Shown piece after piece: positions 12,080 to 63,292 of a stretch of 64,000 nucleotides of DNA. The translations under genes were made by a program, and so were the position numbers. Positions within the stretch are counted from its first letter, which is position 1. Each line of letters starts with the position of its first letter. The stretch is taken from the sequence record OZ195776.1. The stretch is one strand, 5' to 3'. The notes under the pieces are model-generated. The model saw only the letters and a program-made list of their open reading frames with translations. It was not told the DNA's origin and made no database searches.

Positions 12080-12673
12080 ATGATTGAATTTATCACAGAG
12101 CGCAAAAGCGGCGACAAGTGGTATCAGGGTAGTCGTGGAGAGGTTGCTCACAACGTTCGTAAGATCGGTGTGAAGAAAGGCGGTGTGAAAGGAGCTATTC
12201 TTTCAAAGTCAGCGAATCTCATTGCCAAGGTGGCAGCTACGGGTACTTTGGGACGCGAGAATCGCAAAATCCAACAAGCGCAAACCAAAATGGAAGCGGC
12301 TGGCGTAAGCGCACTTCGTTATATGAACTACCTGGAAGCATCTATCAAATCTGACCGTCCTCGCGATGAAATTGTGAAGTCTGCGAAGCTATTGAAAGGC
12401 TATATTTCGGACACGAATAAGGCAGTACAAGAAGTTGTACGTCTAATTGACCGTTACCAACGACTTGACAACGAAGAGAAGCGTTCGCGTGGACTTGCTG
12501 GTGCAATCGTAGGTGCCGACGAGTTTTCGAAATACGACTTCCAAGATTTCTACCGAATGATGAACGACATCGAAGATGTTGCATTCAACTTAAACAAAGC
12601 AGCAACCGCTGCAATCACCAACGATTACGAATACGCATTGCGTCAAATGCATGCAGTTAAAGGTATTTTATGA
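12080..12673 (+). CDS. Putative internal head protein
   Basis: N-terminus MIEFITE resembles gp21-cleaved targeting leaders (T4 Alt MELITE); late promoter upstream. Confidence 0.55.
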   Translation: MIEFITERKSGDKWYQGSRGEVAHNVRKIGVKKGGVKGAILSKSANLIAKVAATGTLGRENRKIQQAQTKMEAAGVSALRYMNYLEASIKSDRPRDEIVKSAKLLKGYISDTNKAVQEVVRLIDRYQRLDNEEKRSRGLAGAIVGADEFSKYDFQDFYRMMNDIEDVAFNLNKAATAAITNDYEYALRQMHAVKGIL

Positions 12674-13197
12674 TTGAGTTTATCGCAGAACAGCGTCGTT
12701 TAAAGACGAGAAAAGGAAGCGCGATTAAGCGTTCCAAATGGGGCGTGGGCAAGGATATTGGCGGAAGCTTGTATGTTCACGTGAATTACGTGCCAGCGGA
12801 TTTTCGTAATATGGTAGATGAAGCACGAATGAAGATTTTGATTGAACATCCAACGTTTGATCCAAACATCGTGCGTATCGACTACAAGAAAGGAAGCGTG
12901 GCGTTTTACGACTCGCCGGAATTTGACAACTCAAACGAACCTGCAGCAGGTACGATGATTGTTGTTAAAGATGGTGTAGTTGCAAAACCAAGAGTGGTTA
13001 AACAGATATGGCATCACAAATGGCTATGGGTAGGAGACGACTATCGTGGTTTCAACGCGGAAGAAGCGTTCAAGCGAAGCGAAGAATGGTTGTCCAAGGA
13101 TACCGAGGATAATCCACTACCATTTGCAAAAATTGGCAACCGCCAGACTTGGAAAGACTGGCTGGCTGACAATAGTTTGAAAGAATCTGCTGGTTAG
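12670..13197 (+). CDS. Putative internal head protein with a domain resembling DNA-phosphorothioation-associated proteins
   Basis: Leader MIEFIAE; motifs GKDIGGSLYVH, NIVRI, VAFYDSPEFD, QIWHHKWLWV. Confidence 0.5.
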   Translation: MIEFIAEQRRLKTRKGSAIKRSKWGVGKDIGGSLYVHVNYVPADFRNMVDEARMKILIEHPTFDPNIVRIDYKKGSVAFYDSPEFDNSNEPAAGTMIVVKDGVVAKPRVVKQIWHHKWLWVGDDYRGFNAEEAFKRSEEWLSKDTEDNPLPFAKIGNRQTWKDWLADNSLKESAG

Positions 13198-14297
13198 TAG
13201 TTCTTCAACAATCCTTCAATAATACGGATACGTGCTTCTGCAAGTGCGTGTCCGTATTCCGGACCTGGTTCAACATCCAGCTTAATTCCAAGCGTGTCGG
13301 TCTTGACTCGTTTCGCAAACGCAGTGATCAGAGGTACGCGACAAGCACTTAACGCCATGTCCAACTCATCGTGAGCATTTCCCCACAATCCAATCGAACG
13401 AAGTACGCGGTACCAAGTACCAGAATCAGTACTAACAAACCCATCTGACATTAATTCATCCAAGACAATCGTTTTCTTAGCAACGCTGATGTATTTCTTC
13501 GGCGCATTTAAGAACTGTAACAATTCAACAAATTCCAATGACGCCATAAACACCTGCTTGTGACCACGGTACGTTTTGCTTGCGTGAATTGCATGAATGC
13601 GATCCCACACTCCAAGTTCCGGAATGAATCCGAATTCAGCCAACAGATCGAAGTACACGATTGGGTCATTTGCATCAAGAGCTTTTTCAGTCTCAACCCA
13701 AATACGCTCAGAAGATACTTTGTGCAACATACCATCACGAACCATTTGACGACACAGTTCCTTCGTCTCTGGAGCAACCGTAAATCCGAGATGGTAGTAA
13801 CGAGCTGCAAATCGAGCACAACGCAACACTCGTAACGGATCTTCTGCAAATGCATCTGAAACGTGACGAATCACCTTGTTTTTCAAATCTTTCAGACCTC
13901 CAAATGGGTCGATTAGATTAGTTGAATCATCTGGGAACGTATCGCAGAATCCCAAAGTCCATTCGCTACCTTTTTCAACTGCCATTGCGTTGATTGTAAA
14001 ATCACGACGACGTAGGTCATCTTCAATGGAAACGTTCTGAACATCACACGTGAAGTCACCGTAACCATCACCAATCGAACGTTCTATTCGAGCCAATGCC
14101 CATTCGTTACCATCAGAATCCAACCAAACAGGAAAGTCAGCACCGATAGTTGGACCGAAACGATCTACCATATCGTTAATCGAAGAGCCAGTTACAACAT
14201 AATCGATGTCTTTTGGACGGTAGCTGTAACCACCACCACTTTTCAAAATAGTGTCACGGACAAATCCACCCACTACGTATTCTGCATACTTTATCAT
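13194..14297 (-). CDS. cca: tRNA nucleotidyltransferase (CCA-adding enzyme)
   Basis: VGGFVRD, KDIDYVV, GADFPV, ALAR.ER, EDDLRRRDFTINAMA, DPFGG, EDPLRVLR.ARFAAR. Confidence 0.95.
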   Translation of the reverse strand: MIKYAEYVVGGFVRDTILKSGGGYSYRPKDIDYVVTGSSINDMVDRFGPTIGADFPVWLDSDGNEWALARIERSIGDGYGDFTCDVQNVSIEDDLRRRDFTINAMAVEKGSEWTLGFCDTFPDDSTNLIDPFGGLKDLKNKVIRHVSDAFAEDPLRVLRCARFAARYYHLGFTVAPETKELCRQMVRDGMLHKVSSERIWVETEKALDANDPIVYFDLLAEFGFIPELGVWDRIHAIHASKTYRGHKQVFMASLEFVELLQFLNAPKKYISVAKKTIVLDELMSDGFVSTDSGTWYRVLRSIGLWGNAHDELDMALSACRVPLITAFAKRVKTDTLGIKLDVEPGPEYGHALAEARIRIIEGLLKNY

Positions 14298-14488
14298 TAT
14301 TTCATATCTCCAGGTTTGAAGTTAGCCCAAGATGCGTCATCAGATAGACGTTTAGAGTGAGCGCGTTCATCTTTCAGTTCGCTACGAAGAGTCATCGTTT
14401 CGGCGATTAGTTGTTGCGTGGTTGATTTGGATACAACTCCAAATTGCTCAAGTTCACGAGCTGCTATTTGTTCAATTGTCGCTTTCAT
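14297..14488 (-). CDS. Hypothetical protein (start at MKATIE)
   Basis: GAGGAAA RBS, early promoter just upstream, stop/start overlap with cca. Confidence 0.6.
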   Translation of the reverse strand: MKATIEQIAARELEQFGVVSKSTTQQLIAETMTLRSELKDERAHSKRLSDDASWANFKPGDMK

Positions 14489-14522
14489 GTCGTTTTCCTC
14501 ATAAATACTCTTCAGTTCTTGT

Positions 14523-14551
14523 ATATTACGAGAATTCATTTAAAAGGCAAC
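14523..14551 (-). promoter_or_regulatory. Early promoter GTTGCC-N17-TAATAT driving the cca operon
   Basis: Forward-strand atatta 14523-14528 and ggcaac 14546-14551. Confidence 0.75.
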
Positions 14552-14552
14552 A

Positions 14553-14560
14553 CATAAATA
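14553..14560 (+). promoter_or_regulatory. Late promoter CATAAATA for the fibre gene cluster
   Basis: One mismatch to consensus, 23 nt upstream of ATG 14584. Confidence 0.65.
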
Positions 14561-14583
14561 CTAACAAAAATGAGGGCAAAATT

Positions 14584-14922
14584 ATGGCTTACGAAAAGGT
14601 AGAATTGCCACCTAAATTGTCGCGTCGCACTCACGGGATTAATTTGGCCGACTATGATGAAGGCGTTTACGTCGATCTGCTAGGTAGCCCAAATGGTATG
14701 GATAGCAATTATTTCGCAATACTCGGCGATCAAAACGTATCGATTGAGTTTGCGATGGGTGGATTTTATAACAACCTACCAGGAAAAGTGGATCCATTAC
14801 CAGGTGTTAGCGACTTTCACCAACTAGGTCCAAATGGTCACTACGAGGCACAAGGGCGATTGTTCACAGGTGATATTCGTTTGTGGTTCCGCGGACGTGG
14901 CATCGTTACAATAGTTTATTAA
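14584..14922 (+). CDS. Small putative virion structural protein (start at MAYEKV)
   Basis: GAGG RBS, first gene of the late cluster; the track start at 14422 overlaps opposite-strand gene and promoters. Confidence 0.6.
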   Translation: MAYEKVELPPKLSRRTHGINLADYDEGVYVDLLGSPNGMDSNYFAILGDQNVSIEFAMGGFYNNLPGKVDPLPGVSDFHQLGPNGHYEAQGRLFTGDIRLWFRGRGIVTIVY

Positions 14923-14931
14923 GGAGAAATC

Positions 14932-16746
14932 ATGTCAAGTATTGACTTGCCTGGCAAGCTGATTGACGCAACGGCAGTTGATCCGCACACTCATCCAATA
15001 TCTGATATTATTGGGTTGCAGGCGTATCTCGATAGAATCATCAACTGGCGCGGTGAATACGCCAACGGCATCGTATACGAACGTAACGATTTAGTGAGAG
15101 ACGGCGATTGGTTAATGCTTGCATTGCAAGAAACTACTGACCAACCAGCTCCTGCTAACTCGGAACCAAATTCGTCAATATACGATGGTCGCGAAACATT
15201 CGTTGAATCATCTTTCGATGGTACGGTGGATTCAGGCTACACAATTACATTCGATAAGGATGGTTACGTACGTCGTCTGTTGGTATACGTACCAGAAATT
15301 AAGGCGGGATTGACTCACCGTCTTATTGTTGAAAACATTACCGATCCTAACAACATATCGGTTTCAGACACAACAAACATTGAATTCATTGCAAATAACT
15401 GGGCATCGGTTGAGATTGGCAATAGCCTAATCAAAGCAGGTACCAAGTTCCGGGTTTATCTGAGTTCTCTTAGTCGCACAAGCGAAACTGTATTCAACGG
15501 TCGTTGGATGTTTGAAAGCTCAAGTGATACGGTACTACCAACTGTCGGTAGTGGTGGATGGACTCGCTTCAAACACAACCAGATTCGTATAAGTAAGCGC
15601 GATTTAGACGACCAGGTGTTGGATCCGACGTTTGCTGACATCGTACCAGGAACAACGTTAGACTTTACTCGTTCGAGTAACGTGGAAAATGGATATACGT
15701 ACCTTGTACGTCGTGTGGTTGATAATACATCAGTTGATTACATCGATTTGGATGTAACACTTAGCGATAACCGCGGTACGTTGGCTGATGGTGATATTAC
15801 AGATACAGTAATCAACATCCCTACTGGCGTTGATACTAAATACGTATCAGAAGCAGATTTTCTTTCAAATTATCCACCAACATTCGCAACCGTTGAAGGT
15901 TACCTATCGCTAAACGGCGCGGTTCAACCAGATACAACAAATATTGGTTATGGACTTGAATTTGACTATCAACCAGCTGTTCTTAGCAGCGATTGGACAA
16001 TGGTCGTTCATGCTCATGGTGGTGCTGGTGGAGATGGAAGCGTCATCGATCCAGATGCGTTCTTGCCTCAACTACGTGGTGGAGAAGAACCAGAAGCGTT
16101 TGCTGCTACCCTAGCGTACGATATAGATTCAAGAGTTGTTTACAACAGTCGAGAATACCGAGCGGTTGCTAGTTCATTAGCCGGTCCATGGGTAGAAGCG
16201 AATTGGGTAGAAGTGTCTATCCAGAACAACGAAGAGCGTATTTCGAATCTTGAAAATAGAACAGTAGAGATTGAATACGAGTACACGCAATCCAAAACGC
16301 CATCAGAATACTGGTCAGTTGATACAGCAGGTCTAACACTAGACGAATTCAATCAACCAAATGTTCAAATATTCTTTAACGGTATTAAGCTTCGCAAAGG
16401 CGGACAAGCAATTTGGATTAGTGCAAACGAACTTCGAATCATATATACGTCTATAGAAACCGAAGATTACCTGATAGTAAGAAAGACGCAGACAGCGTCG
16501 GCTGGCTCGATTACAGAAGTTGATATTACACAAGATAAGAATCCAAGCGAAGTTTGGACGATCTCAGGTGTTAACATTGGCAACTCAGTATCGGAGTTTG
16601 CAGACCCTAAAATCCAAGTGTACTACAACGGAGTTAAACTTCGTAAAGGCGCACAAGTTGTTTGGATTAGTGCAACAGAACTACAGCTTAATCATTACAC
16701 CTCTGTTCAATCAGAAGATTACCTAACTATCAGAACAACTGTCTAA
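14932..16746 (+). CDS. Putative fibre/structural protein with CBM-like motifs and duplicated C-terminal domain
   Basis: WRGEYANGIVYERNDLV motif, one CBM5/12-like repeat, two copies of Q(I/V)xxNGxKLRKGxQxxWISAxEL. Confidence 0.65.
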   Translation: MSSIDLPGKLIDATAVDPHTHPISDIIGLQAYLDRIINWRGEYANGIVYERNDLVRDGDWLMLALQETTDQPAPANSEPNSSIYDGRETFVESSFDGTVDSGYTITFDKDGYVRRLLVYVPEIKAGLTHRLIVENITDPNNISVSDTTNIEFIANNWASVEIGNSLIKAGTKFRVYLSSLSRTSETVFNGRWMFESSSDTVLPTVGSGGWTRFKHNQIRISKRDLDDQVLDPTFADIVPGTTLDFTRSSNVENGYTYLVRRVVDNTSVDYIDLDVTLSDNRGTLADGDITDTVINIPTGVDTKYVSEADFLSNYPPTFATVEGYLSLNGAVQPDTTNIGYGLEFDYQPAVLSSDWTMVVHAHGGAGGDGSVIDPDAFLPQLRGGEEPEAFAATLAYDIDSRVVYNSREYRAVASSLAGPWVEANWVEVSIQNNEERISNLENRTVEIEYEYTQSKTPSEYWSVDTAGLTLDEFNQPNVQIFFNGIKLRKGGQAIWISANELRIIYTSIETEDYLIVRKTQTASAGSITEVDITQDKNPSEVWTISGVNIGNSVSEFADPKIQVYYNGVKLRKGAQVVWISATELQLNHYTSVQSEDYLTIRTTV

Positions 16747-16757
16747 CAGGAGACAAC

Positions 16758-27789: not shown

Positions 27790-28320
27790 TTATTTCAATG
27801 TTACGAAACGACTGTTTGCAGACTCACGTACAAGCACTTCACCGTTTTTAGCAATCCAATGACGGATTGTTTTCAAATCAGACTCAATAGATGAATCTAC
27901 TGACGTTTCATCGCCAGCCAAGAACGCGTTAATCGAACGGAAATCAACGTTTGCGTATGGCTTATCACCATTCACTAAATTCAATTCCCAAGCAGGTTCG
28001 AAACCTTCTTCTACTACTGGTGGAAGCCAAGGCTCTTCGTCAGAATCGATGCTAACATCAACTTCGACGATTTCTTCTGGTGTTTCCACTTCTTCTTCCA
28101 CAATCGCGTTTACAACGACCAATTCTTCATTGTCGTCTTCTGCTACGAATGGGAGAGGCTTCACAGGCGCTGTGCCTTCAATTGCTTTGTTAAGTTGTTC
28201 TACCATAACCTTCTTACTTTTACGACGATCCAAATCTACCTCAAAATATTCAGTAGCGAATGCGTCTAATTCGGCCTTACTAAGACCTTCAATGTATTGT
28301 TCCATTTTATTATCACTCAT
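27790..28320 (-). CDS. inh: Inh-like protein, paralogue 2
   Basis: C-terminal IRHWIAKNGEVLVRESANSRFVTLK vs T4 Inh YYINRDGSVLIRETRNSSFVTLK; acidic linker. Confidence 0.8.
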   Translation of the reverse strand: MSDNKMEQYIEGLSKAELDAFATEYFEVDLDRRKSKKVMVEQLNKAIEGTAPVKPLPFVAEDDNEELVVVNAIVEEEVETPEEIVEVDVSIDSDEEPWLPPVVEEGFEPAWELNLVNGDKPYANVDFRSINAFLAGDETSVDSSIESDLKTIRHWIAKNGEVLVRESANSRFVTLK

Positions 28321-29619: not shown

Positions 29620-30114
29620 CTATCTACGAAATTTATCAATATTTTTCTGATATTCTTTGTGACTCCACAATCCAAACGTAATTGTCTTACCGTTTCTCCA
29701 CCACACTAAGGCGATTGGATCAGGTTGACGTGGATTGTTTGGGTTCATGCCGTCAATCAGCTTAGGGTGCGGCTTAGAGTGCCAAATCGGCTGTGTAAAC
29801 TTGCCTTTGAATGCCCAACCATTCTTCGACTTGCCCATCTTATCGTCCGGACGTGATGCATTGCCCTTGTAAGCAACTTCGTAAATCGTGTTCATTACGG
29901 CACGCATCGCATCTGGGTTAGATTGTAGTTTGGCAAAGTGATGCTGTGAATCTGAATCGAATTTCCACTGATATTCCGGAGTCTCGGTGTCCATTAGATG
30001 CTGGACTTCTGCGGTCGTCAATAGATTGCTGATTTGTGCATACGCTTCGTCAAGTACGTCAAGTCGAACTACGCCTAAGATGTTTTCATAGTGAAATTCG
30101 CTAAATGTTTTCAT
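29620..30114 (-). CDS. Putative internal head protein
   Basis: N-terminus MKTFSEFHYE resembles the T4 capsid targeting sequence MKTYQEFIAE; downstream of late promoter 30551. Confidence 0.6.
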   Translation of the reverse strand: MKTFSEFHYENILGVVRLDVLDEAYAQISNLLTTAEVQHLMDTETPEYQWKFDSDSQHHFAKLQSNPDAMRAVMNTIYEVAYKGNASRPDDKMGKSKNGWAFKGKFTQPIWHSKPHPKLIDGMNPNNPRQPDPIALVWWRNGKTITFGLWSHKEYQKNIDKFRR

Positions 30115-30115: not shown

Positions 30116-30523
30116 CTACCTCAAATATACAAAGTTATCGCGAGCGTTGTTACGTACAAGCAACTTGCCACGCTTTTTAATCCAATATTCGATTGTTTGT
30201 AGATCTGCGCTATCACGACGACCACTGTTCCAAGAGTGAATCATTTCTGGACTCATGGATATGTAATATTCGTTACCGCGACGGAAGGTAGGTGCCCAAC
30301 GTGGTCGGAACTTTTCAAGTGCAGGCACTTCTTGCTCAACCAACTCGGACTCTTCTTTTACTTCTTCCTCGTCAACAACCACCTCTGGTTCTATTACCAG
30401 GTCTCGGTCCTTGATTAGCTCTAAGATTGATACCTTCGGAAGATTTTTGTCAAATTCAACATCTGGGAAATTTTCTTCTATGTATTCAATCAGTTTACGC
30501 TTTGTTAATGATGATAAGCTCAT
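30116..30523 (-). CDS. Inh-like protein, paralogue 3
   Basis: C-terminal TIEYWIKKRGKLLVRNNARDNFVYLR; acidic linker; F.P.W motif shared with paralogue 2. Confidence 0.65.
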   Translation of the reverse strand: MSLSSLTKRKLIEYIEENFPDVEFDKNLPKVSILELIKDRDLVIEPEVVVDEEEVKEESELVEQEVPALEKFRPRWAPTFRRGNEYYISMSPEMIHSWNSGRRDSADLQTIEYWIKKRGKLLVRNNARDNFVYLR

Positions 30524-30550: not shown

Positions 30551-30576
30551 TACTTATAAAACTCCGTCTATAAATA
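30551..30576. promoter_or_regulatory. Divergent late promoters: TATAAGTA (minus, 30551-30558) and TATAAATA (plus, 30569-30576)
   Basis: Between divergent inh-like and uvsW genes, as in the T4 inh/uvsW arrangement. Confidence 0.75.
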
Positions 30577-35626: not shown

Positions 35627-35797
35627 CGTTTTTTCTCTTTTCCAGGTATATTTTTGGTATTTTGATATAACTCCGTCTTTATACAGGGAATCCACGTACT
35701 CCATCCATCGTAGAATTTCGCAACCTTCGTAAACCATCTCAGAAAATATAGTTCTGGCTTCTCTTTTCGTTATTCTATCTTGCATAACGTTTTCCAT
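35600..35797 (-). CDS. Small hypothetical protein
   Basis: 65 aa ORF whose 3' end overlaps the promoter; support is weak. Confidence 0.4.
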   Translation of the reverse strand: MENVMQDRITKREARTIFSEMVYEGCEILRWMEYVDSLYKDGVISKYQKYTWKREKTVASEPTIL

Positions 35798-35836
35798 AAG
35801 TAAGTTAGTGATAATATTTAAAGGAACTGTAACGTG

Positions 35837-37561
35837 ATGTTGACGTTTAATGAATTAAAAGAAAATGCAGATGGCGTGTATGACTACCACGTTGCACGCA
35901 AAGTAGGGAAAACTCACCTATACCGTATCAGCAACCCAGCGAAGCAAGATATCGCAGTTGCATTTAGTCCACTTAGCCAATCTGGCTTTACATCGACCGC
36001 TAAACGAGTTTGGTTTGGTACGGTGTCCGCGATCAAGCAACGTAAAGGTGGCGCTGTGATTCGTGACCTGGGTGATCCTGGTATGATGGCCAATACCATT
36101 GGCAATGTGGTTGATGAATTCTTCGTAGCGCGCAAAGCTAACGCGGTTATGCTTCGTGTGAATAAAGTTGGTAGTGGTAAGCTGTGGGACGTGCAATTGA
36201 AACGCGTTCTGAAGAAATATCGCCTAAAAGCAGAAACCACTCAAATGGTCGCTAATGGTGAATCAGATATTCGTGGTTCGTACAGCTTCTTCGTAATCAG
36301 TCGCGCGTCATTTAACCCAGACACGCTATTTGAATCAGAAGAATCAACAATCCGTCGTATCGCTTCGATGATGGCTCAAGAACCGGATCCAGCGTTTGTA
36401 ACCGTGTCTATGGCGATGTCTGACGTACCTGGTGCAGAGTTTAAAAGCGAAGAAGCAATCGCTCAGTGGATGGAAGACGAGCCACCTCGTGTTGTAACAA
36501 ACTCATTGCAACTTACTCTTGGTGCACGCTTCTCATACCCACAAACAATCATCGGTCGTAAAATCGAAGCACAAAATGCTGTTAAACAAGCAGTGTTTAC
36601 TGACGAAGACACGCAACGACAAGTTGAATTGCTTCTGAGTGCGTCAGAAGGCGCTATTGAACTGGATTCTGATCCAATTGCAATCGCGAACAAATTAATG
36701 CCAATGGTTCGTAATATTGACATGTCATCTCCGTCAGTAGCACGTGCTGTTAAAAAGCTGACTGCTCACGTTGGTCGTGCCCAAGCCGATAGAACACGTA
36801 ACCAGTATGCGGATTTGTCTGCTAAGTTGGTTGACGACTACGCTGACAAGATATCTCCAGAAGAACGCACCGTAATCAAAGAATACACAGGTCTTGAATA
36901 CGAAAGCATTAACGAAGCGTTGATGCACGGTACGGAAGATTCTGAATACATCGATAAGATCAATACGCTTGATAACGCGTTTAGCTCTATCGGAATGAAC
37001 ATGGGAAATCTCAAACCACGTACGATGTTGTATCGCGGATTGCCAATGGATAACCACGTTGCAATTGAGATGGTCAAGAACAAATCATTTGCGAGTTTGG
37101 CATTCATGTCATCTTCGATGGATCCAATGACAGCGTCTCAGTTTGCTGAATTGTATCCGTTCCGTTTGGTAGCATCAGAGACTGAGCCTGCTGACTTCGT
37201 AAACGTATTGCGTGAGTCTTCGGCGAAAGAGTGTGGCGTGGTATTCATTATCGATCCGGAAGGCGTACCTGGTTTGATTCCTGGTGATATGGGTGTTGCT
37301 GCAGAAACGGAAGTGATTATCAACCGTGGAGTGACGTTCAGAGCTGATCCAGTTAGTATATCGCCAGATGGCAAGTACATGGTCGTTCGATTGTCAGTAG
37401 CTGATAAGAAGGCTTACGTTGAATCTGTTTTGGGAATGGTACAAGCAAACAATGCTGCTGTTGCGTTGGAAGGTATTGCTGATATGATTTCCGTGATGGA
37501 ATTTGATGAAGAAGATATTGGTACAACCTGCGCTGAGAAGCAAAGAAGTCCAATCGTGTAA
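35837..37561 (+). CDS. alt: Alt-like NAD:protein ADP-ribosyltransferase, likely virion-packaged
   Basis: C-terminal ART signature YTG..Y..IN, LYRG, FMSSS, ETEVIINRG; leader MLTFNELKE; CATAAGTA late promoter at 35795. Confidence 0.85.
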   Translation: MLTFNELKENADGVYDYHVARKVGKTHLYRISNPAKQDIAVAFSPLSQSGFTSTAKRVWFGTVSAIKQRKGGAVIRDLGDPGMMANTIGNVVDEFFVARKANAVMLRVNKVGSGKLWDVQLKRVLKKYRLKAETTQMVANGESDIRGSYSFFVISRASFNPDTLFESEESTIRRIASMMAQEPDPAFVTVSMAMSDVPGAEFKSEEAIAQWMEDEPPRVVTNSLQLTLGARFSYPQTIIGRKIEAQNAVKQAVFTDEDTQRQVELLLSASEGAIELDSDPIAIANKLMPMVRNIDMSSPSVARAVKKLTAHVGRAQADRTRNQYADLSAKLVDDYADKISPEERTVIKEYTGLEYESINEALMHGTEDSEYIDKINTLDNAFSSIGMNMGNLKPRTMLYRGLPMDNHVAIEMVKNKSFASLAFMSSSMDPMTASQFAELYPFRLVASETEPADFVNVLRESSAKECGVVFIIDPEGVPGLIPGDMGVAAETEVIINRGVTFRADPVSISPDGKYMVVRLSVADKKAYVESVLGMVQANNAAVALEGIADMISVMEFDEEDIGTTCAEKQRSPIV

Positions 37562-37601: not shown

Positions 37602-37931
37602 TTAGTTTAGTTCGAGTTCTTCCATTTCACCCGCACCAACGTCCATCACTTTTTCTAAAGGAATCCAACGAGTGCCGTTAAAGTACTGACACTGGTCATT
37701 CCACTTAGAAGGAAGAACGTTGAAACGCCACTTCTCGTAAGGAACCGACTGAACGACCATTGCTTTCCAAGCACATGACGTTGCAGGAGGAAGACGGGAG
37801 TATGCAGCAAAACCAAGAAGAACCACAGCAATTAGAATAGCAAGCGCAGAGCGCTTGTATTCCATCGCAAGTTCCCAAAAGATTGTTGCGTTGTCCCAGA
37901 ATGCAACTACTTTATTCCAGTATGTTTTCAT
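37602..37931 (-). CDS. Membrane protein downstream of dda (Dda.1-like position; start at MKTYW)
   Basis: One TM segment, C-x-W...C-Q-Y...WIP pattern. Confidence 0.55.
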   Translation of the reverse strand: MKTYWNKVVAFWDNATIFWELAMEYKRSALAILIAVVLLGFAAYSRLPPATSCAWKAMVVQSVPYEKWRFNVLPSKWNDQCQYFNGTRWIPLEKVMDVGAGEMEELELN

Positions 37932-50996: not shown

Positions 50997-51200
50997 TTAG
51001 TAACCTGCTACGTCGTCGATTGCTTGATTAAAATCGTTCATGTAGTGGTGACCAAATTTTTTGACAAACTCTTTCTTCATCTTATCGATGTCCATGTCAG
51101 AGTTTTCTAGTTTGTCAACTGCCCAGTCGTAAGCTGCCATTGATGCAGCGCCGTTACGTTCAGTTATTTTGCTTTCGCTAAATTGCTCGAATGTTTTCAT
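50997..51200 (-). CDS. Small putative internal head protein
   Basis: MKTFEQFSE leader; CATAAGTA late promoter at 51235-51242. Confidence 0.65.
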   Translation of the reverse strand: MKTFEQFSESKITERNGAASMAAYDWAVDKLENSDMDIDKMKKEFVKKFGHHYMNDFNQAIDDVAGY

Positions 51201-51237
51201 TTGCGTGGTTCCTTTTGTATTAATGAATTCTTTTTAC

Positions 51238-51612
51238 TTATGAGAACTCTACAATGGCACCATTTTCAGCATCTTCGTTAACTTCAACTTTCCACCAACG
51301 ACCTTCAGCACCCCAAATGTCGTTCAGATGTTCGATGATGTTCATACCAAACTGCTCACATGACATTCGACCCAAATCTCGTGGAAGTGTGCTTAGATAT
51401 GCATCCAGTGTACGACGGAGTTGTATGAATTCGATGTCTCGATCATCGTGAAAGACGTTTGTTTCTACACGAAAGCCAAAAATATGACGATGTGGGTGCG
51501 CCAAGAACGATACATCCAAATCGCTCCCATCGCATAGCTCTGGGATGGTAGCGGATTCTGGAAAGTTGTGAATAAATTCACGAGAAGTTGTAACAAATAC
51601 CGAAGTCTTCAT
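51238..51612 (-). CDS. QueD-like T-fold protein (6-pyruvoyl-tetrahydropterin synthase family paralogue)
   Basis: FIH, HPHRHIF, DRDIEFI, MSCE, VEVNEDAENGA match the QueD/PTPS pattern. Confidence 0.75.
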   Translation of the reverse strand: MKTSVFVTTSREFIHNFPESATIPELCDGSDLDVSFLAHPHRHIFGFRVETNVFHDDRDIEFIQLRRTLDAYLSTLPRDLGRMSCEQFGMNIIEHLNDIWGAEGRWWKVEVNEDAENGAIVEFS

Positions 51613-51664
51613 AAAGAGTCCTTATAAATAACAATAAACTGCATATCCCATTTTGGAACATACT

Positions 51665-52342
51665 ATGAAAAAATACCACTATACCTACAAAACTACCATA
51701 TGTCACCCATCTAAAGGAGATTTAATTTACGTCGGTAAGCACTCGACGGATAATCTCGACGACGGATATCTTGGTTCTGGTAAGATATTACTCGCTATGA
51801 TAGCCAAATACGGCAGAGACATAGCCAGTCTGGAAGTTGCTGATATGCATTTAACTGAAAGTGCTGCGTACGAAGCAGAATGTCAGTTGATATCAGAAAC
51901 CGTACAATCATACCCAAATACCTGTTTGAATTTAACTGGGTTTGGTGGTCGTTACGATTATAATCCAGACAAACCATACGAAAGACAACCATTTCAACAC
52001 GATGAAGCTGCCAAAGCAAAAATGAGTAAGAGTCGCTTTGGAAAAAAGCAAAGTACCGAAACAAAAGCTAAGCGAGCTGCGTCACACAGAGGCCGTAAAA
52101 ACACCACCGAAACCAAGCAAAAAATGCGCGAGTCTCGATTGAAAGTTGCTCAAACTCAAGAACACAAAGATTTAGTTAGCGGTGAAAATCACCCCAAGTT
52201 TAAAGGGTGGTATCACACTCCACTTGGAAAGTTTCCAAGTGCTAATCAAGCCGCAAAAGCCTACAATACCAAAACACAGTGTATTATTAACTGGTGCAAG
52301 ACGACGAGAAAGCCGGAGTTCTGGTTTGAGCCAAAGGGGTAG
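51665..52342 (+). mobile_element. Free-standing Seg-like GIY-YIG homing endonuclease with NUMOD3/NUMOD1-like motifs
   Basis: HYTYKTT...IYVGKHSTDNLDDGYLGSG, EAE..LI, CLNL; ETKAKRAASHRG and ETKQKMRES repeats; own TATAAATA at 51623; opposite strand to neighbours. Confidence 0.88.
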
Positions 52343-53791: not shown

Positions 53792-54472
53792 TTAAAACGG
53801 CCAGTCATCATCCAATACTTCGAAGTATGGTGCTGCTGAAATCGTACCCTCGATTCGAAAAATCGAACGGTCTGGGTTACGGACCGCAACATTACGCGAT
53901 GGCGTCGTTGCAGCTCGCTGATCCGTAATATCATCACGGAACGGGCCAGTATCAACAACACCATGCACCAATATTGCACTTTTGCTACCGAGTTCTTTTG
54001 CGTCAGCATCAAACTGAGTAAATTGATTGAATCTGTCGCTAGGTTTGTTAAATTCTTTTACGAATTCAGGGCGTAGCTTAACACCAGTAATAGTACCGTC
54101 AGGACCAGCATACGTCGCCGCTTGGTGGATGTTTTCTGTTAGAAACGTTGCATAGCCATCTCGACTGCGCATTCCATAATCACCTCGCGTACCACGATAC
54201 CAAATCGCGCCACCTACTAAACGTGCAGCTTCTCGTTTCAAACCTGTTCTCCAAACGCTCTCTAAATCAGCAATTGCCTTTTTGACCGCAGATGGAGCAT
54301 CGTCTGTATCGTAACCGTTCATGAACAGTTCCCATGTAAAATCATTGTAATTGCTCGGAGAGACGGATTTAACGATTTTAACACGAGACTGATCATCCGT
54401 TGCTGCTATGAATTCTGCTACAGCTCTTTCAACTGCTACAGATTCCCATAGATGTTCATTGAATGATTTCAT
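53792..54472 (-). CDS. Putative packaged ADP-ribosyltransferase-like protein
   Basis: Leader MKSFNEHLWE; WYRGT, FLTENIHQAATYAG, ILVHGVVD pattern; GATAAATA at 54498-54505. Confidence 0.55.
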   Translation of the reverse strand: MKSFNEHLWESVAVERAVAEFIAATDDQSRVKIVKSVSPSNYNDFTWELFMNGYDTDDAPSAVKKAIADLESVWRTGLKREAARLVGGAIWYRGTRGDYGMRSRDGYATFLTENIHQAATYAGPDGTITGVKLRPEFVKEFNKPSDRFNQFTQFDADAKELGSKSAILVHGVVDTGPFRDDITDQRAATTPSRNVAVRNPDRSIFRIEGTISAAPYFEVLDDDWPF

Positions 54473-54503
54473 TGTAATTTCCAATGTAGAAAACTACTAT
54501 TTA

Positions 54504-54887
54504 TCAAGAAACCGTTTCTAACACAACGTGTTTGACTTTGGTTACCTTATGGACCTTGGCGATCGCAAATTGCTCATCGCTTTTAGCAGCCCACTCAGTT
54601 GCCAATTTTTCAGCTTCCGCAAGAGACAAGTCGCTCGCTTCTACATCAGCGTTATCGATGTTAAGAACACACCAAACTTGACGTTCTGGTTTGACGACCT
54701 TAGTCGATTCCAGCATGTTCTCTGCGATTGTCGCCGAACGATTGTCATCGGTTTTCACACGATACCGTTGGGATTCCCAATTGAATCCCTTTGCTTTCAC
54801 CGCTACTACGTATCCGTAACAGCCCGCACAAGGCGATTGGCTGTTTTCGGAAACACGCACACGCTCTTTCATTTTAAATCGAGCCAT
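54504..54887 (-). CDS. Hypothetical protein with N-terminal KOW/SH3-like barrel
   Basis: FKMKERVRV...G.VVAV...YRVK...I.E..LE. Confidence 0.6.
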   Translation of the reverse strand: MARFKMKERVRVSENSQSPCAGCYGYVVAVKAKGFNWESQRYRVKTDDNRSATIAENMLESTKVVKPERQVWCVLNIDNADVEASDLSLAEAEKLATEWAAKSDEQFAIAKVHKVTKVKHVVLETVS

Positions 54888-57579: not shown

Positions 57580-57611
57580 AAAAAAAGCCGCTAATGCGGC
57601 TTTTTCTTTAT
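57580..57611. terminator. Bidirectional terminator, identical to 32130-32161
   Basis: GCCGC-TAAT-GCGGC flanked by A and T tracts, between convergent genes. Confidence 0.85.
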
Positions 57612-58281: not shown

Positions 58282-58329
58282 GACAATTGCTCCAATTAAG
58301 AAAAAAGCGGCATAATGCCGCTTTTAGAA

Positions 58330-58713: not shown

Positions 58714-58785
58714 GTTCAATTACCTTTCATTAAAATATATGATGCTCACAAGAGCGTTTTCAAGAATTGTTACTATACCAGAGTT

Positions 58786-59112
58786 TTACTCTGATTTATA
58801 CACTACAGCGATGTTTTTGTAGTGTGTATGTACCCATTTAACACGTTTAGTGTCGGTTTGTTCCATCTGACCAGCGATGATACGTGGATCTGGTACGTTC
58901 TTAATGTGACCTTGTGGCAACAGAACGATGTCCCCTACGCTTACGATGTCTTGGTCAACTTCACCACCAACTGAAATTACTTTGCCATGCAAAGGCACTT
59001 CACCTTGGTTAAGTGTACCTAAAACGATACCACCAGCGGATTTAAGTTCTTCACCTTCCGACTTGGCGTTGGTATCAATGATGACTTGTTCACCTTGAGC
59101 GTATGCTTTCAT
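58786..59112 (-). CDS. 31: GroES-like co-chaperonin (gp31)
   Basis: AQGEQVII, KSAGGIVLG mobile loop, GKVISVG, VGDIVLLP, HYKNI. Confidence 0.92.
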   Translation of the reverse strand: MKAYAQGEQVIIDTNAKSEGEELKSAGGIVLGTLNQGEVPLHGKVISVGGEVDQDIVSVGDIVLLPQGHIKNVPDPRIIAGQMEQTDTKRVKWVHTHYKNIAVVYKSE

Positions 59113-59312
59113 TCTTTGCTTCCATATTTTGCACGAGCTTCTTCAAATGCTGACGTGCGTTGTTTTACTGCTTTTTGTCGTTCTTCAAATTCACGACACT
59201 TACGACGTCTTGGTCCGTCTTCCACATCATAATCGATTGGATTGGAACCACGTTGGTCCCAACCAATCCAGTAATCAGTGAGTTCATCCAAGATTTCTTT
59301 AGAGCTTGCCAT
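59109..59312 (-). CDS. Small hypothetical protein
   Basis: 67 aa with overlaps at both ends. Confidence 0.55.
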   Translation of the reverse strand: MASSKEILDELTDYWIGWDQRGSNPIDYDVEDGPRRRKCREFEERQKAVKQRTSAFEEARAKYGSKE

Positions 59313-59565
59313 TCGGTACGATGCCTACGAACTTATCTGATTTAAACGAACGCCAACCTTTAGCATCAAAATCGTAATAACGAATTGTTTTGACGCCCTC
59401 GTGGTCTTCCGTAACCAGTCCATCCTGGACACCGCCTTTCGGCAATTTATCATCAGGTACGTAATCGATGTTACGGGTACCCAATGCGATTCGTTCAGAA
59501 CCATCGGCTTTCTTAAAAGAGAACTTAACGATAGAACCGTTTAACGCTTTAACAATGTCAATCAT
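59299..59565 (-). CDS. WYL_2/DUF2693-like protein (T4 gp31.1-like)
   Basis: VKFSFKKADGSERIALGTRN, YYDFDAKGWRSFK. Confidence 0.8.
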   Translation of the reverse strand: MIDIVKALNGSIVKFSFKKADGSERIALGTRNIDYVPDDKLPKGGVQDGLVTEDHEGVKTIRYYDFDAKGWRSFKSDKFVGIVPNGKL

Positions 59566-59605
59566 ATTACCACCAATATAAGGCCGGTTAAACCGGCCAT
59601 TTCAA

Positions 59606-60505
59606 TTAAAGTTCTACAATTGCGCCTTTCGACAAACCTTCCGATACCCATAGACGAGTAGCGCCAAGCTCACGAAGACGGTCGCCAAACTCACGCTCAA
59701 CAGCGCTTGCTAGGTTTTCGATTGTAGTTTCGTGTGGGAACACTGTAACTTTCGAAGTTGTTTCCATGCGGAAGTTACCGCGTAGTGAACGATATGCGAT
59801 AACCAAGTTTGGATCTTCTACCGTTACGTTTTCGTTCCAAGCAAAGATGCCTTGATAGAAATCAGCGATTTCTTGTAGCAATGCAGTTGCTTCTACGTCA
59901 GTTGCGATGAACGAACGATGGCCATGAGCAATGTTTTGACAACCGTAGCTCGTGCTCGAACGTAGACCGTGAACGTATTTGAATGTTGTGTGCGAAACTA
60001 CTGCTTTTGGCAAGAAGAAGTTGCTGCACAAATCAACTACCACTTTAGTTACTGGATAACCAAGAGCGATTAGTTCACGTTTTAGCATATCTTCGATGTA
60101 TGCCTTTAGATGAGCATGGTATTGCTCTTCTTCTGTTGCATCTTCCGCTGCGATACCGTTCATTGGAATTACTTGATACCAATCATCAACCGATGCAACT
60201 ACTGATGTGGTCGATGTGTCAAGTGCAACACGGTCACGGTCTTTAACATCTTGCATACCGTATATACCAAAGCCGTCAACAACAACCATACGGTGGTCAA
60301 TTGCGTGCTCGCTATCATCGATCAGTTTTTTGATTTCTTTCTTACAACCAGAAAAGTCGATTACAACCTGCTCTTGAGCATCAACTTCACCAGCGATTTC
60401 ACATGACAGTGTTAACGACTCGCCGATTAGATTACCGTTTTTACCTAACCAACAATGATCGATTACTGAAATATCGCCGACGTACATGTTTGCTGTTTGA
60501 ATCAT
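59606..60505 (-). CDS. queD: Two-domain 6-carboxy-tetrahydropterin synthase (QueD2-type)
   Basis: ISVIDH.W...GES, VIDFSGCKKEIK, IDHRMVV, YVHGLR...GCQNIAHGHRS, TTIENLA; resembles the long gammaproteobacterial QueD. Confidence 0.85.
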   Translation of the reverse strand: MIQTANMYVGDISVIDHCWLGKNGNLIGESLTLSCEIAGEVDAQEQVVIDFSGCKKEIKKLIDDSEHAIDHRMVVVDGFGIYGMQDVKDRDRVALDTSTTSVVASVDDWYQVIPMNGIAAEDATEEEQYHAHLKAYIEDMLKRELIALGYPVTKVVVDLCSNFFLPKAVVSHTTFKYVHGLRSSTSYGCQNIAHGHRSFIATDVEATALLQEIADFYQGIFAWNENVTVEDPNLVIAYRSLRGNFRMETTSKVTVFPHETTIENLASAVEREFGDRLRELGATRLWVSEGLSKGAIVEL

Positions 60506-60506
60506 T

Positions 60507-60743
60507 TTAAACCCTTTCATATTCATTTGATTGTAACCAGATTTGGAACTCTTCGATCCAAACTTGGTCGCTTGTTGCGTGAAGTTTTACTTCTATTGGA
60601 AGTGTACCGTACTTAGCGGCTGCTTTTAAAGCTCGAATCGCATATAAACTTTCCATAATGGATTGTTCTGCCAATTCATCTTCACTTTCTATTTGGTCGA
60701 CTATTGCCTCAGGCTTTAGTCTGACAACGATAAAAGTACTCAT
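60507..60743 (-). CDS. Hypothetical protein (start at MSTF)
   Basis: 78 aa between dCMP deaminase and queD. Confidence 0.5.
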   Translation of the reverse strand: MSTFIVVRLKPEAIVDQIESEDELAEQSIMESLYAIRALKAAAKYGTLPIEVKLHATSDQVWIEEFQIWLQSNEYERV

Positions 60744-61242
60744 CTGAGTCCCACCATCTCGAGCGATCCTCTGGATCATTTACAAAAACTTCAATGTCGT
60801 GAGAAAGCAACCACTTTCTCCAATTCGGACCTACCGAAGGATGCACATCCTTAACAAAAACGCGTCTGATGCCCGCAGCTACGATGATTTTTGCGCAATT
60901 AACACAAGGACTTAGCGTAACATAGATGTCAGCTCCCTCTGTGCTCAATCCGGCACGTGCAGCGTAACAAACAGCGTTTTGTTCAGCGTGTATCTCATTT
61001 TCAAGAGACCACTTTGTGTGAGCTTGACGGTTAGTTAGAACATAACCTCCAGCCCCATTGGATTTAGCGAATCCTAAACGTTGACCTTCGCAGCCGCATT
61101 TGGGAGCTCCCGAAGGAGTCCCGTTGTAACCAGTGCTCAAAACACGATCGTTTTTAACAATGACCGCACCAACTTGGTATTTCAAGCAGCTACTTTCCTG
61201 AGCAACTAACGTTGCCATTCCCATGAACGTACAAGGCTTCAT
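60709..61242 (-). CDS. cd: dCMP deaminase
   Basis: SSCLKYQVGAVIV, STGYNG, HAEQNA, TLSPCVNCAK. Confidence 0.95.
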   Translation of the reverse strand: MKPCTFMGMATLVAQESSCLKYQVGAVIVKNDRVLSTGYNGTPSGAPKCGCEGQRLGFAKSNGAGGYVLTNRQAHTKWSLENEIHAEQNAVCYAARAGLSTEGADIYVTLSPCVNCAKIIVAAGIRRVFVKDVHPSVGPNWRKWLLSHDIEVFVNDPEDRSRWWDSDEYFYRCQTKA

Positions 61243-61243
61243 A

Positions 61244-61528
61244 TTACAGTCCAAACATTGATTCAGCAGGAATCCACTTCTCAAGGCATACAAAGCCACG
61301 AGAAACGATTTTCGGAATCATGTCCGAAGCAACTTCCATTGCTGTGCGTGTTTGTTGATAGAAACCATCTTCGTCGCAACCGAATACCGGATGGAACATG
61401 ATTGGATTCACGTAAAGAACACCGTTGTATTCAAATGAAAGGTGAGCTACTGGGTAAGTGCCATTGGCTACTTCGATTAGGTTACCTTCCATTGCTTTGA
61501 TTTCGATTGCAGTTGTGTTCAAGTTCAT
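61244..61528 (-). CDS. Small early hypothetical protein
   Basis: AAGGA RBS, behind family A cassette copy 3. Confidence 0.65.
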   Translation of the reverse strand: MNLNTTAIEIKAMEGNLIEVANGTYPVAHLSFEYNGVLYVNPIMFHPVFGCDEDGFYQQTRTAMEVASDMIPKIVSRGFVCLEKWIPAESMFGL

Positions 61529-61548
61529 ATTGAATCCTTAGTTGTTTG

Positions 61549-61607
61549 GTTAATGGCCGTTGCCGGCCGACAGAGCACATATTACAGGATTCAGAATTTC
61601 AGACAAC
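61549..61607 (-). repeat. Early promoter/stem-loop cassette, family A copy 3
   Basis: GTTGTC-N17-TAATAT then GTGCTCTGTCGGCCG-GCAA-CGGCCATTAA. Confidence 0.85.
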
Positions 61608-61928
61608 TTATTTTTCGATATTTTCGATAGGAATTTCTAAGTCAGGACGGTCAGCCACCATTTGACGCACGGTAGCTTCGTCTACATTAAGTTCGTAGAA
61701 CGACATAGATTTGGTTTGAGCGTAGCAAACTTCGTCAGATACGAAGAACTTTGCGACATTTGACGTGATTACCCACTTGTCTTCACCGAAGCGCTCGTGG
61801 ATATCGTCGGTAATGTAGCCAGACAGTGCAGCTTTCTTGAAAGGATTGAACGGACGTTCGTCGATTAGACGCTCTTCTTTTAGACGTAGTTGAGCGGTAA
61901 CGATTTCTTGCAGTTTTTCAATAAACAT
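61608..61928 (-). CDS. Hypothetical protein
   Basis: 106 aa, TAATG overlap with the DUF4326 gene. Confidence 0.6.
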   Translation of the reverse strand: MFIEKLQEIVTAQLRLKEERLIDERPFNPFKKAALSGYITDDIHERFGEDKWVITSNVAKFFVSDEVCYAQTKSMSFYELNVDEATVRQMVADRPDLEIPIENIEK

Positions 61929-62224
61929 TATGTAAACCTCAGTAAAGGACTGGAGAGACGCTCCAGATGTTTCAAAATAATATCACCATGACAACGCTTC
62001 GGTTTACACCAACAACCGAGCTTTTTACCACGCAGTTTGAGAAACTCCGTGACGTTATCTGGATCTTCAAGTTCGCAAAGCAACCACTCTTCGTAAAGAG
62101 CGATTACTTCGGTTCTGGTACCGTGGACACCAATCTTAAATGGGTTTCCCCACCGACTGAGTCCACGAGCTACCGGTACGTCACAATCTTCGTGACGCAT
62201 GTTGACAACGGTTGTTTTTACCAC
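61928..62224 (-). CDS. DUF4326 family protein
   Basis: VVN...DV...R.SRWGNPF, Y.EWL, LRGKKLGCWCKPKRCHGD. Confidence 0.88.
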   Translation of the reverse strand: MVKTTVVNMRHEDCDVPVARGLSRWGNPFKIGVHGTRTEVIALYEEWLLCELEDPDNVTEFLKLRGKKLGCWCKPKRCHGDIILKHLERLSSPLLRFT

Positions 62225-62835
62225 TCATCATCCTCGTCAAGTTCGTCACCATGGTAGGCAACGATTGACGAACTTGACGATAGGTTCAGACCCATTACAG
62301 ACTTCGCGAAGCTGTTTACTTCGTTAACCGTATTGGATGTAAGACGACTGTCGTTAAGAATCAGATCGTCACCAACGAATGAGCTGTTAATTGGAACTAG
62401 CACGTTTTCGTTTGGTAAAAGACCAGCACCATGCTTCTTACACGCAGCAATCAGTTTCTCTACGCGTGCGATGTCCGAATCAGACATAACGTAAAACTCA
62501 CTACGATCGATTTCAAGACCATATACGTAAAACGGTTCACCGCCGGAGTATTTGCGAACACTGTAGCCTTTGAGTTTCGATGGTACCACTGGAATTTGGT
62601 AAATCCTCATGCCAAAGCCAAGAACCGCTGCTGGATCTTTCTTAGCAGGCAATGCGTCTTTCAACATTTTGCTAGTATTGACTGTTCTGCGTGAGCTTGA
62701 GCTTGATGAGCGCATTGAGCTACCAAGTCCTTGACCAGCCATGTAAGATCGTGCCTGACGCGCGTCCATGCCACTTGAGCGAATGAAATCGCGTGCTGTG
62801 TTACGCTGTTCGTTAAATTGAGTAAATGTTTTCAT
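62218..62835 (-). CDS. Putative internal head protein (start at MKTFTQF)
   Basis: MKTFTQFNE leader, AGGGA RBS; the track extension overlaps the next gene. Confidence 0.65.
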   Translation of the reverse strand: MKTFTQFNEQRNTARDFIRSSGMDARQARSYMAGQGLGSSMRSSSSSSRRTVNTSKMLKDALPAKKDPAAVLGFGMRIYQIPVVPSKLKGYSVRKYSGGEPFYVYGLEIDRSEFYVMSDSDIARVEKLIAACKKHGAGLLPNENVLVPINSSFVGDDLILNDSRLTSNTVNEVNSFAKSVMGLNLSSSSSIVAYHGDELDEDDEW

Positions 62836-62848
62836 TGTAATCCCTATG

Positions 62849-63292
62849 TTATTCTGAAAGAATGAATAGAACTGAATCATCTTGGTCTTGCGTGCGTAGA
62901 GTGTGGTACCCGTACTGCTTACCAAAACGTAAAGCCATTCTTTTGTATAATGATACACGACTTCGGTCCGCTTTAGAACCCTCAAATCGTATCGTATCAA
63001 TATCGTAACCTTGTTGCATTGATTTATTCAAAAATGCGCTAATTCCAGCTACGACTGTTGAGAATACCATAGGAGCATTGCCTGTTCCTGTCGCATCCCA
63101 TCTAATTTTGTTGCCATCTCGGAGGCTAAATTCGACATCAAGCGTACCTTCGTATTCGGTCAAATATATTCCGTACATACGGTCGTCTATTTTGAACGTT
63201 CCGGTCCACTCTTCGTCGTATTGCCACTTCCAAGTGATTTGAGCTGGTCGTGAATTAAACGACTCAGTCAAATGTTCTCTGAACGATATCAT
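62849..63292 (-). CDS. Putative internal head protein
   Basis: MISFREHLTE leader, GGAGG RBS, CATAAATA late promoter at 63311-63318. Confidence 0.7.
   Translation of the reverse strand: MISFREHLTESFNSRPAQITWKWQYDEEWTGTFKIDDRMYGIYLTEYEGTLDVEFSLRDGNKIRWDATGTGNAPMVFSTVVAGISAFLNKSMQQGYDIDTIRFEGSKADRSRVSLYKRMALRFGKQYGYHTLRTQDQDDSVLFILSE

Follow-up and report, generated by a model that had tools for sequence, protein, structure and literature searches.

Vibrio phage D479 (OZ195776.1) has a genome of 257,764 bp and comes from a mix of seawater and oyster. Dispersed over its bases 1-64000 are eight genes whose proteins start with short leaders ending in Glu. These 64,000 nucleotides are referred to below as the window. 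Together with at least six further genes elsewhere in D479, the eight probably encode head-internal proteins with a capsid-targeting sequence (CTS) of the T4 type. The original prediction had named the eight as a set of late genes with capsid-targeting leaders, a modular arsenal of effectors that are packaged and ejected with the DNA. That set proved too small: 6 to 9 further leader genes were found in the rest of the genome, giving a total of 14-17. The evidence observed directly comprises the leaders, which exceed chance and are conserved while the bodies diverge, the late promoter motifs, the prohead protease and the capsid cleavage site. By analogy with T4, the tagged proteins would be targeted to the head, cleaved, retained and ejected, and would counter host defences.

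D479 is unclassified in the NCBI taxonomy. Judged by sequence, it is a KVP40-related T4-type jumbo phage. Its head proteins share 47-76% identity with those of KVP40 and 35-64% with those of T4, and it is therefore considered a divergent relative of the Schizotequatrovirus group. The window starts with a T4-type head/tail module (terminase, gp18, gp19, gp20, gp67, gp68, gp21, gp22 and gp23). The whole genomes of D479, KVP40 and D484 and the relevant parts of T4 (NC_000866) were compared. The candidates in the window are called c1 to c8, and tagged genes elsewhere in the genome are numbered from c9 upward. A slash in a leader sequence marks the putative cut after the leader Glu.

Eight leaders and their excess over chance

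All eight open reading frames (ORFs) were present in the window, each starting as quoted in the original prediction:

12080..12673, plus strand: c1, 197 aa, leader MIEFITE/R, phrog_16422, orthologue of KVP40.0372
12670..13197, plus strand: c2, 175 aa, leader MIEFIAE/Q, equivalent to the N-terminal half of the 320-aa KVP40.0371
29620..30114, minus strand: c3, 164 aa, leader MKTFSEFHYE/N, basic, phrog_16269, orthologue of KVP40.0375
35837..37561, plus strand: c4, 574 aa, leader MLTFNELKE/N, predicted Alt-like ADP-ribosyltransferase (ART)
50997..51200, minus strand: c5, 67 aa, leader MKTFEQFSE/S
53792..54472, minus strand: c6, 226 aa, leader MKSFNEHLWE/S, helical N-domain and C-terminal domain 88-221
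62218..62835, minus strand: c7, 205 aa, leader MKTFTQFNE/Q, serine-rich orphan, second gene of the c8 operon
62849..63292, minus strand: c8, 147 aa, leader MISFREHLTE/S, equivalent to the C-terminal half of KVP40.0371

For seven of these genes, OZ195776.1 annotates the same start. The exception is c7, for which the start in the record (62880) overlaps the preceding gene; the start at 62835 lies 14 nt past the stop of that gene. Position 4 was Phe in all eight leaders. Position 7 was Phe in c3, c5 and c7, Leu in c4 and His in c6 and c8, and the leaders of c1 and c2 were of the short Alt-like type. Five leaders (c1, c2, c4, c6 and c8) end in I/L-x-E and two (c5 and c7) in F-x-E.

The claimed likeness to the T4 leaders agrees with the sequences in NC_000866, where ipII and ipIII start MKTYQEFIAE/A, ipI starts MKTFKEF...ITE/A and alt starts MELITE/L, and also with the published rules (PMC9026906). 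Residues 1-10 of IPIII suffice for head targeting, with residues 4 and 7 as the main determinants; residues 8 and 10 govern processing, and gp21 cleaves after L/I-x-E (PMC9026906). One more T4 gene has such a start: gene 61.1 (NC_000866 18966-19130; 54 aa, hypothetical, 5′ of the primase gene) begins MKTFKEFIKE/D, a perfect CTS-like 10-mer. From its sequence, gp61.1 may have been overlooked as a fourth internal protein, or it may speak against the specificity of the tag.

The leaders were far more frequent than expected by chance. Written as a degenerate DNA pattern, M-[KI]-x-F-x-[QE]-[FHY] matched five times in the window, compared with 0.00 in 100 shuffles, and MK[TS]F occurred at eight ATGs in the whole D479 genome against 0.8-1.3 expected (P about 1.5e-6). 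When a loose leader regex was applied to the 91 annotated genes of the window, it returned the eight candidates and one probable false match (54504-54887). A DNA pattern for MKT[FY]x[QE]F found T4 ipI, ipII and ipIII and seven D479 genes, and none in KVP40. The exact form MK[TS]Fx[QE][FHY] was present eight times in D479 and was absent from KVP40, D484, F86 and 1.081.O. The codons for F, Q and E differ synonymously among the D479 leaders, indicating selection at the protein level. A gene at 37602-37931 starts MKTYWNKVVAFWD, its first four residues being those of T4 ipII and ipIII; the sequence then turns hydrophobic, no late motif accompanies it, and the gene probably does not belong to the tagged set.

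The bodies behind the leaders are unrelated, as had been claimed. Self-tblastn (E<=1e-3) gave no cross-matches among c1-c8, and their PHROG and Pfam families were different or none. In the wider genome set c10 and c12 are paralogous, as are the members of the c8 family. Many of the mature, leader-less forms are basic, with pI > 9. A mobile DNA cassette of promoter plus leader is not evident; the upstream regions have only the promoter and the ribosome-binding site in common.

Leader conservation against diverging bodies

The comparative evidence gives what is, on sequence grounds, the strongest support for head-internal proteins. Orthologues of c1-c4 in four other lineages retain a leader ending in Glu, while their bodies are 29-64% identical. 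Five lineages have MIEF[IL]TE in c1, although the proteins overall are only about 37% identical and the residues after Glu vary. Orthologues of c2 start MSIIFE, MNLIFE or MIIFE and continue with a conserved R..KTRKGS. The c3 orthologues have the leaders MLRFNEYE/N, MFKFSEYE/N, MIQFSEHE/N and MFKFAEYE/N, and those of c4 start MIGFQQLTE/N and MIGFQELNE/T.

A second line of comparison came from c8 and its paralogues in D479, KVP40 and D484, here called the DUF6934-like family. The leaders of this family differ in sequence and in length (5-12 residues). In the alignment, the leader Glu forms an invariant column, followed immediately by (A/S)(F/L)(D/N)(R/K)P, with which the conserved domain starts. 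Three members stand in tandem at 224790-226705 of D479 (VPHD479_0391, 0392 and 0393), with the leaders MKTLQTYMVE, MNDFKQFMVE and MEFRTFLTE. The kinship of c8 and its paralogues with DUF6934 is suggested by Atlas features (0.95 to DUF6934 clusters, TM 0.78, with a GNAT-like fold as a lead) and by common PHROGs; c8 matched phrog_6387, phrog_16075 (positions 164-304) and phrog_27801. No Pfam match was obtained for c8, and its paralogues scored 14-23 bits against a PF22028 cut-off of 27, which one D484 paralogue alone passed. Weak PF22028 matches inside Alt-like genes raised the idea that the family corresponds to the N-terminal domain of Alt; at an hhalign probability of 0.13 this was unsupported.

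KVP40.0371, D484_0017 and F86_0016, each about 320 aa long, join a c2-like half to a DUF6934-like half. The domain junction of KVP40.0371 reads LTE/SLDKPA, a putative internal protease site. D479 encodes the halves separately, as the distant genes c2 and c8, both of which have a leader of their own, and a short c2 form is also present in 1.081.O. Compared in this way, the sequences point to gene fission or fusion.

Late promoter motifs of the tagged transcription units

Late promoter motifs, NATAA(A/G)TA, had been reported upstream of the genes or their operons. All six were found at the coordinates given for them, 18-34 nt 5′ of the ATG that opens the gene or its operon, and they are correctly positioned for all six transcription units of c1-c8:

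12047..12054, plus strand: CATAAATA, c1-c2 operon, 25 nt 5′ of ATG 12080
30551..30558, minus strand: TATAAGTA, operon of c3 and the Inh-like gene inhB, 27 nt 5′ of ATG 30523
35795..35802, plus strand: CATAAGTA, c4, 34 nt 5′ of ATG 35837
51235..51242, minus strand: CATAAGTA, c5, 34 nt 5′ of ATG 51200
54498..54505, minus strand: GATAAATA, c6, 25 nt 5′ of ATG 54472
63311..63318, minus strand: CATAAATA, c8-c7 operon, 18 nt 5′ of ATG 63292

The c1 orthologues of KVP40, D484, F86 and 1.081.O are all preceded by a late motif, which in these phages reads TCTAAATA at the same position. Within its operon, c2 is translationally coupled to c1 through an ATGA overlap. A hairpin terminator (50993-50974) directly follows the c5 stop, and c5 is thus a self-contained unit of promoter, gene and terminator. 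Both gp22 and gp23 use the G variant TATAAGTA (the gp23 copy is at 8247), indicating that this variant is a genuine late promoter here.

Thirteen of the 19 motifs in the window closely precede the start of an ORF and have the right orientation for it, including those of gp22 and gp23. A late motif was near five of the nine window genes that match the loose leader regex, compared with seven of the 82 others. Outside the window, four leader genes (c10, c12, c13 and c14) have a late motif of their own. Genome-wide, the NATAA(A/G)TA 8-mer occurs 48 times, against a mean of 72 (range 58-94) in a first-order Markov simulation; this rarity is consistent with avoidance of the motif outside promoters. 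One 84-bp intergenic region holds back-to-back late motifs (30551-30576), one leading leftward into the inhB-c3 operon and one (30569) rightward into uvsW. A homing endonuclease gene at 51623-52342, on the strand opposite to its neighbours, has its own late motif, TATAAATA, 34 nt upstream.

Prohead protease and capsid cleavage site

The window also encodes the presumed leader peptidase and the major capsid protein:

6700..7359, plus strand: gp21-type prohead protease, 48% identical to T4 gp21
8286..9839, plus strand: gp23 major capsid protein, maturation site ..GLTE/AQIGGDHGYN

The catalytic residues of gp21 are His85 and Ser140, and the enzyme is reported to cleave x-x-E as well, more weakly (PMC12991175). 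D479 gp21 retains the motifs GELNHP (His85) and GVSSRGLGS (Ser140) as well as its own LLIE/SWG site. Alignment by eye showed that the gp23 site is conserved relative to ..FLTE/AEIGGDHGYN of T4. The N-terminal Phi-x-E sites of D479 gp21 and gp22 are likewise conserved.

Leader genes elsewhere in D479 and in metagenomes

The following leader genes lie outside the window:

148895: leader MRSFKEHALDE
149991: leader MKGFNDY...IAE, a possible member
150236: leader MKTFAQFLTE, annotated start later, ATG overlapping the upstream stop
170831, minus strand: leader MKTFEQFNE
170916: leader MKTFDQFITE
173048, minus strand: leader MKTFEEFNE
225218, minus strand: leader MKTLQTYMVE
225921, minus strand: leader MNDFKQFMVE
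226705, minus strand: leader MEFRTFLTE

Several deposited starts are probably wrong (62218-62880, 150236-150508 and 148814-149989 of D479, and KVP40.0116 and KVP40.0150). Ribosome sites, stop-start coupling or late promoters agree better with the leader ATGs at 62835, 150236 and 148895 and with internal Met codons of the two KVP40 genes. Genes that combine a late promoter with a looser leader number about ten in KVP40 and about six in D484.

The tag turned out to be widespread. DNA encoding MKTFxQFxE was present on at least 120 IMG/VR contigs, compared with 12 for a permuted-codon control. Of the 121 MKTFxQFxE matches listed, 116 stand at the start of an ORF that is 40 aa or longer, and the frame is hardly open on their 5′ side; matches to the control, by contrast, fall inside ORFs. 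The mature parts form at least 65 unrelated clusters. A late-type motif lies within 70 nt of 29 of the matches listed, and 57 of the 80 loci checked have T4-like genes (gp13, 14, 15, 17, 18, 20, 21 or 23) within 5 kb. The largest tagged cluster among the matches listed is a family of 51-aa proteins that start MKTFKQFQEEWSNKYKK, found on at least 22 T4-like environmental contigs. Because the tag stands at ORF starts, on unrelated bodies and near T4-like genes, it is taken to be a feature of the T4 superfamily; the idea that the tagged set is peculiar to this phage was not borne out.

We tentatively propose, with confidence a little short of even, that MKTFxQFxE and the looser M-x-x-F...Phi-x-E variants act as a head "zip code" throughout the T4 superfamily, from which the injected proteome could be read by sequence alone. 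The D479 leaders may have been homogenised to the T-even consensus, which KVP40, D484, F86 and 1.081.O lack. Such homogenisation would imply either co-evolution of the tag with the scaffolding core or import of tagged cassettes.

Predicted cargo

The original prediction had assigned two bodies to the ART-like class. For c4 the assignment was clear, and for c6 it held at the level of an ART-superfamily fold, with moderate confidence. The sequence of c4 matched PF03496 (4.7e-14; 52.6 bits against a cut-off of 23.4) and phrog_802 (2.1e-39). Its ART domain is 28% identical to that of T4 Alt, and the YR, STS and ExE elements are kept (LYRG, FMSSS and ETEV aligned). Alt reprograms RNA polymerase. 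Since T4 Alt is packaged and injected, and since c4 has both a leader and a late promoter, c4 can serve as an internal positive control for the leader set.

No homologue of c6 was found in 50,697 phage records and no close relative in IMG/VR; an exhaustive search returned 17 metagenomic relatives. Short relatives start with Phi-x-E leaders (MKLLEITE, MKIKEILNE, MRYQELIE, MKLTQIFNE and MLLVELCE), and two contigs with c6 relatives carry T4-like neighbours. One distant relative forms the C-terminal domain of a 2552-aa protein encoded next to a gene for a DNA-ejection-protein homologue. An AF2 model of c6 built with 16 homologues had a pLDDT of 89.7, compared with 37, which is unusable, for the single-sequence model. 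When residues 88-221 of this model were searched with Foldseek and VIA, the top PDB matches were almost all ART domains (Z 5.3-7.9), with Foldseek E-values of only 0.03-0.5. They included MbcT (Z 7.9), PARP1/2/4 and tankyrases (Z 6-6.7), a pre-ejectosome protein of cyanophage A4 (Z 6.3) and cholix toxin (Z 5.4), and earlier Atlas leads agree. The modelled C-terminal domain of c6 is thus likely, with moderate confidence, to have an ART-superfamily fold. Searches of Pfam and of PDB sequences gave no match for c6. When the c6 family was compared with the Alt ART domain by hhalign, the alignment was limited to the YRG segment and was not significant (E 0.059). The family invariants are Y92, R93, G94, Y121 and D174.

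A third body had been described as resembling a phosphorothioation-associated protein. What remained of this was a weak likeness of c2 alone to TIGR04096 (DNA phosphorothioation-associated putative methyltransferase), at 16.7 bits against a cut-off of 150 and over the C-terminal 146 positions only, with an Atlas TM of about 0.5 to the same family. The likeness to this dnd-associated methyltransferase family is weak and concerns one accessory domain, the C-terminal part.

The mature c1 protein is basic (pI 9.7). No informative match for the bodies of c1, c3, c5 and c7 was obtained in family searches, and c7 had no homologue in the 50,697 phage records or in IMG/VR. No homologue of c5, c6, c7, c9, c11 or c13 was found in KVP40 or D484. 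PDB sequence searches with c4, c6, c7 and c13 and with the A1 and A2 family profiles gave nothing useful.

Proposed route into the host and alternative explanations

Tagged genes would be transcribed late, alongside the head genes, from gp55-type NATAA(A/G)TA promoters. The leader of 5-12 residues, with its Met, an aromatic residue at position 4, a hydrophobic residue around position 7 and a hydrophobic-x-Glu end, would then dock the protein onto the scaffolding core of the assembling prohead, and the gp21-type protease would cleave after the leader Glu. The mature proteins would remain in the head with the DNA and be ejected into the next host cell, acting there ahead of any phage gene expression. 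The cargo would comprise an Alt-like ART, a second protein of ART-superfamily fold, the multi-copy DUF6934-like family and several small basic proteins.

Several observations weigh against this proposal. The leaders of c5 and c7 have Phe, not Leu or Ile, at P3. The c3 leader is non-canonical (H-Y-E, or F-S-E at residues 4-6), and its exact cut site is uncertain because the residue at P3 before the last Glu is not hydrophobic. The 19 matches to the promoter 7-mer in the window are at chance level (16.7 +/- 3.9); it is the placement of the motif, not its count, that carries the signal. No canonical late motif of their own was found for c9 and c11. T4 gene 61.1, with its CTS-like start, lies in the early region, and NC_000866 gives it no internal-protein annotation, so the tag alone may not prove packaging. 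A search of sequence runs for D479 found no RNA-seq runs, only the source DNA run containing the sequence; for phages of the KVP40 type, neither RNA data nor, in the literature, a virion proteome was found.

The tagged products might instead serve in assembly only. Like gp67, gp68 and Inh, they would belong to the prohead core, to which their leaders would target them, and would be degraded and lost before DNA packaging, hence not injected. In T4, most core proteins do leave the head (PMC9026906). The head module of D479 offers some support for such a role. Compared with the one inh gene of T4, the window holds three Inh-like paralogues (prohead protease inhibitor / minor head protein), two of which adjoin tagged genes and two of which have their own late promoters:

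11292..11921, plus strand: Inh-like paralogue adjoining c1-c2, phrog_8608 (6.8e-8) and phrog_1051 (3.6e-5)
27790-28320: third Inh-like paralogue
30116..30523, minus strand: inhB, first gene of the c3 operon, phrog_8608 (6.5e-24), its stop 1 nt from the c3 ATG

D479 gp68 itself starts MKFITE, and several tagged products are small and basic and lack an enzymatic signature. An Alt-like ART and an ART-fold protein, on the other hand, make sense only inside a host cell, and many of the cargo genes are orphans dispersed among non-structural genes, which is unexpected for assembly factors. Moreover, T4 IPI-III, with exactly this type of leader, are retained and ejected (PMC9026906). A purely assembly-related role is therefore unlikely.

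Another explanation would attribute the common N-terminus to selection on translation initiation, through A-rich codons after the ATG, or to some other N-terminal function, the likeness to the CTS being a coincidence. AAA ACA is common as codons 2-3 of highly expressed phage genes; the early-region T4 gene 61.1 shares the start, and the exact MK[TS]Fx[QE][FHY] form is missing from the four related phages. Selection on codons fits poorly with conservation that reaches residues 4 and 7 and the terminal Glu while the codons vary synonymously, and with a Glu that is invariant and marks the domain boundary in the DUF6934-like family despite differing leader lengths. In addition, the permuted-codon control was about tenfold rarer and fell inside ORFs, and in the window the tag is linked to late promoters. 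We regard this explanation as quite improbable.

Finally, a meaningless chance resemblance of a few N-termini, conceivable in that the leaders are short and MK.. starts common, can be dismissed as negligible in view of the shuffles, the genome-wide Poisson P and the orthologues that keep the leader.

Head-internal proteins with a T4-type CTS thus remain the preferred explanation for the tagged set. Injected proteins are prime candidates for counter-defence, because they act before any phage gene expression. A short, searchable tag provides a ready list of candidate injected proteins for a marine Vibrio phage from an oyster-associated collection, and most of the D479 candidates lack known relatives. 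Judging by the metagenomic survey, T4-like phages at large could be mined with this tag. The leader could also be used to load foreign proteins into KVP40-type heads, as has already been done in T4.

Comparison with known systems

The closest parallel is the set of T4 internal proteins. Both have an N-terminal tag of about ten residues, MKT(F/Y)x(E/Q)F..E, that ends in a gp21 site and agrees in residue class at the functionally mapped positions 4, 7, 8 and 10. In both, no kinship links the bodies, which are often small and basic, and the genes look non-essential and lie at several loci. T4 Ip1-3 each block a different GmrSD-type restriction enzyme acting on glucosyl-hmC DNA (PMC12373910). The differences are those of host and lineage (a KVP40-related Vibrio jumbo phage) and of number, with 14-17 tagged genes in D479 against three annotated internal-protein genes in T4. 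No D479 body is homologous to any T4 internal protein. The D479 units have a proximal canonical late promoter, whereas T4 ipII and ipIII have none within 50 nt.

T4 Alt, of which about 40 copies are packaged, trimmed by gp21 and injected (PMC9026906), shares with c4 the Alt/VIP2-type ART domain, a short leader ending in Glu, a late promoter and its location close to the ligase gene (gene 30). The 28% identity is confined to the ART domain, and the N-terminal 320 residues of c4 could not be aligned by BLASTP. The c4 leader is of the longer MxxFxxLxE type, compared with MELITE in T4.

In the phiKZ-like giants (201phi2-1, phiKZ and SPN3US), many head-internal proteins are also cut after Glu by a gp21-related protease and ejected, whereas their propeptides are long and variable and end in S/A-x-E (PMC9026906). 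A short common tag like MKTFxQFxE is not described for them in that review. The MuF-fused and polyvalent effectors (Iyer et al. 2017; PMC9503650) similarly deliver ARTs and other enzymes through head packaging. They do so as fusions to a structural domain within a giant polypeptide, in contrast to the separate small genes with putative cleavable tags in D479.

In the papers searched, the CTS is described for T-even phages only, and no account of CTS-like leaders in KVP40-type phages was found; the KVP40 genome paper or Repoila 1994 may already mention such leaders in KVP40. The D479 set is not a new kind of system; it is an unusually large instance of a known mechanism, extended to new genes.

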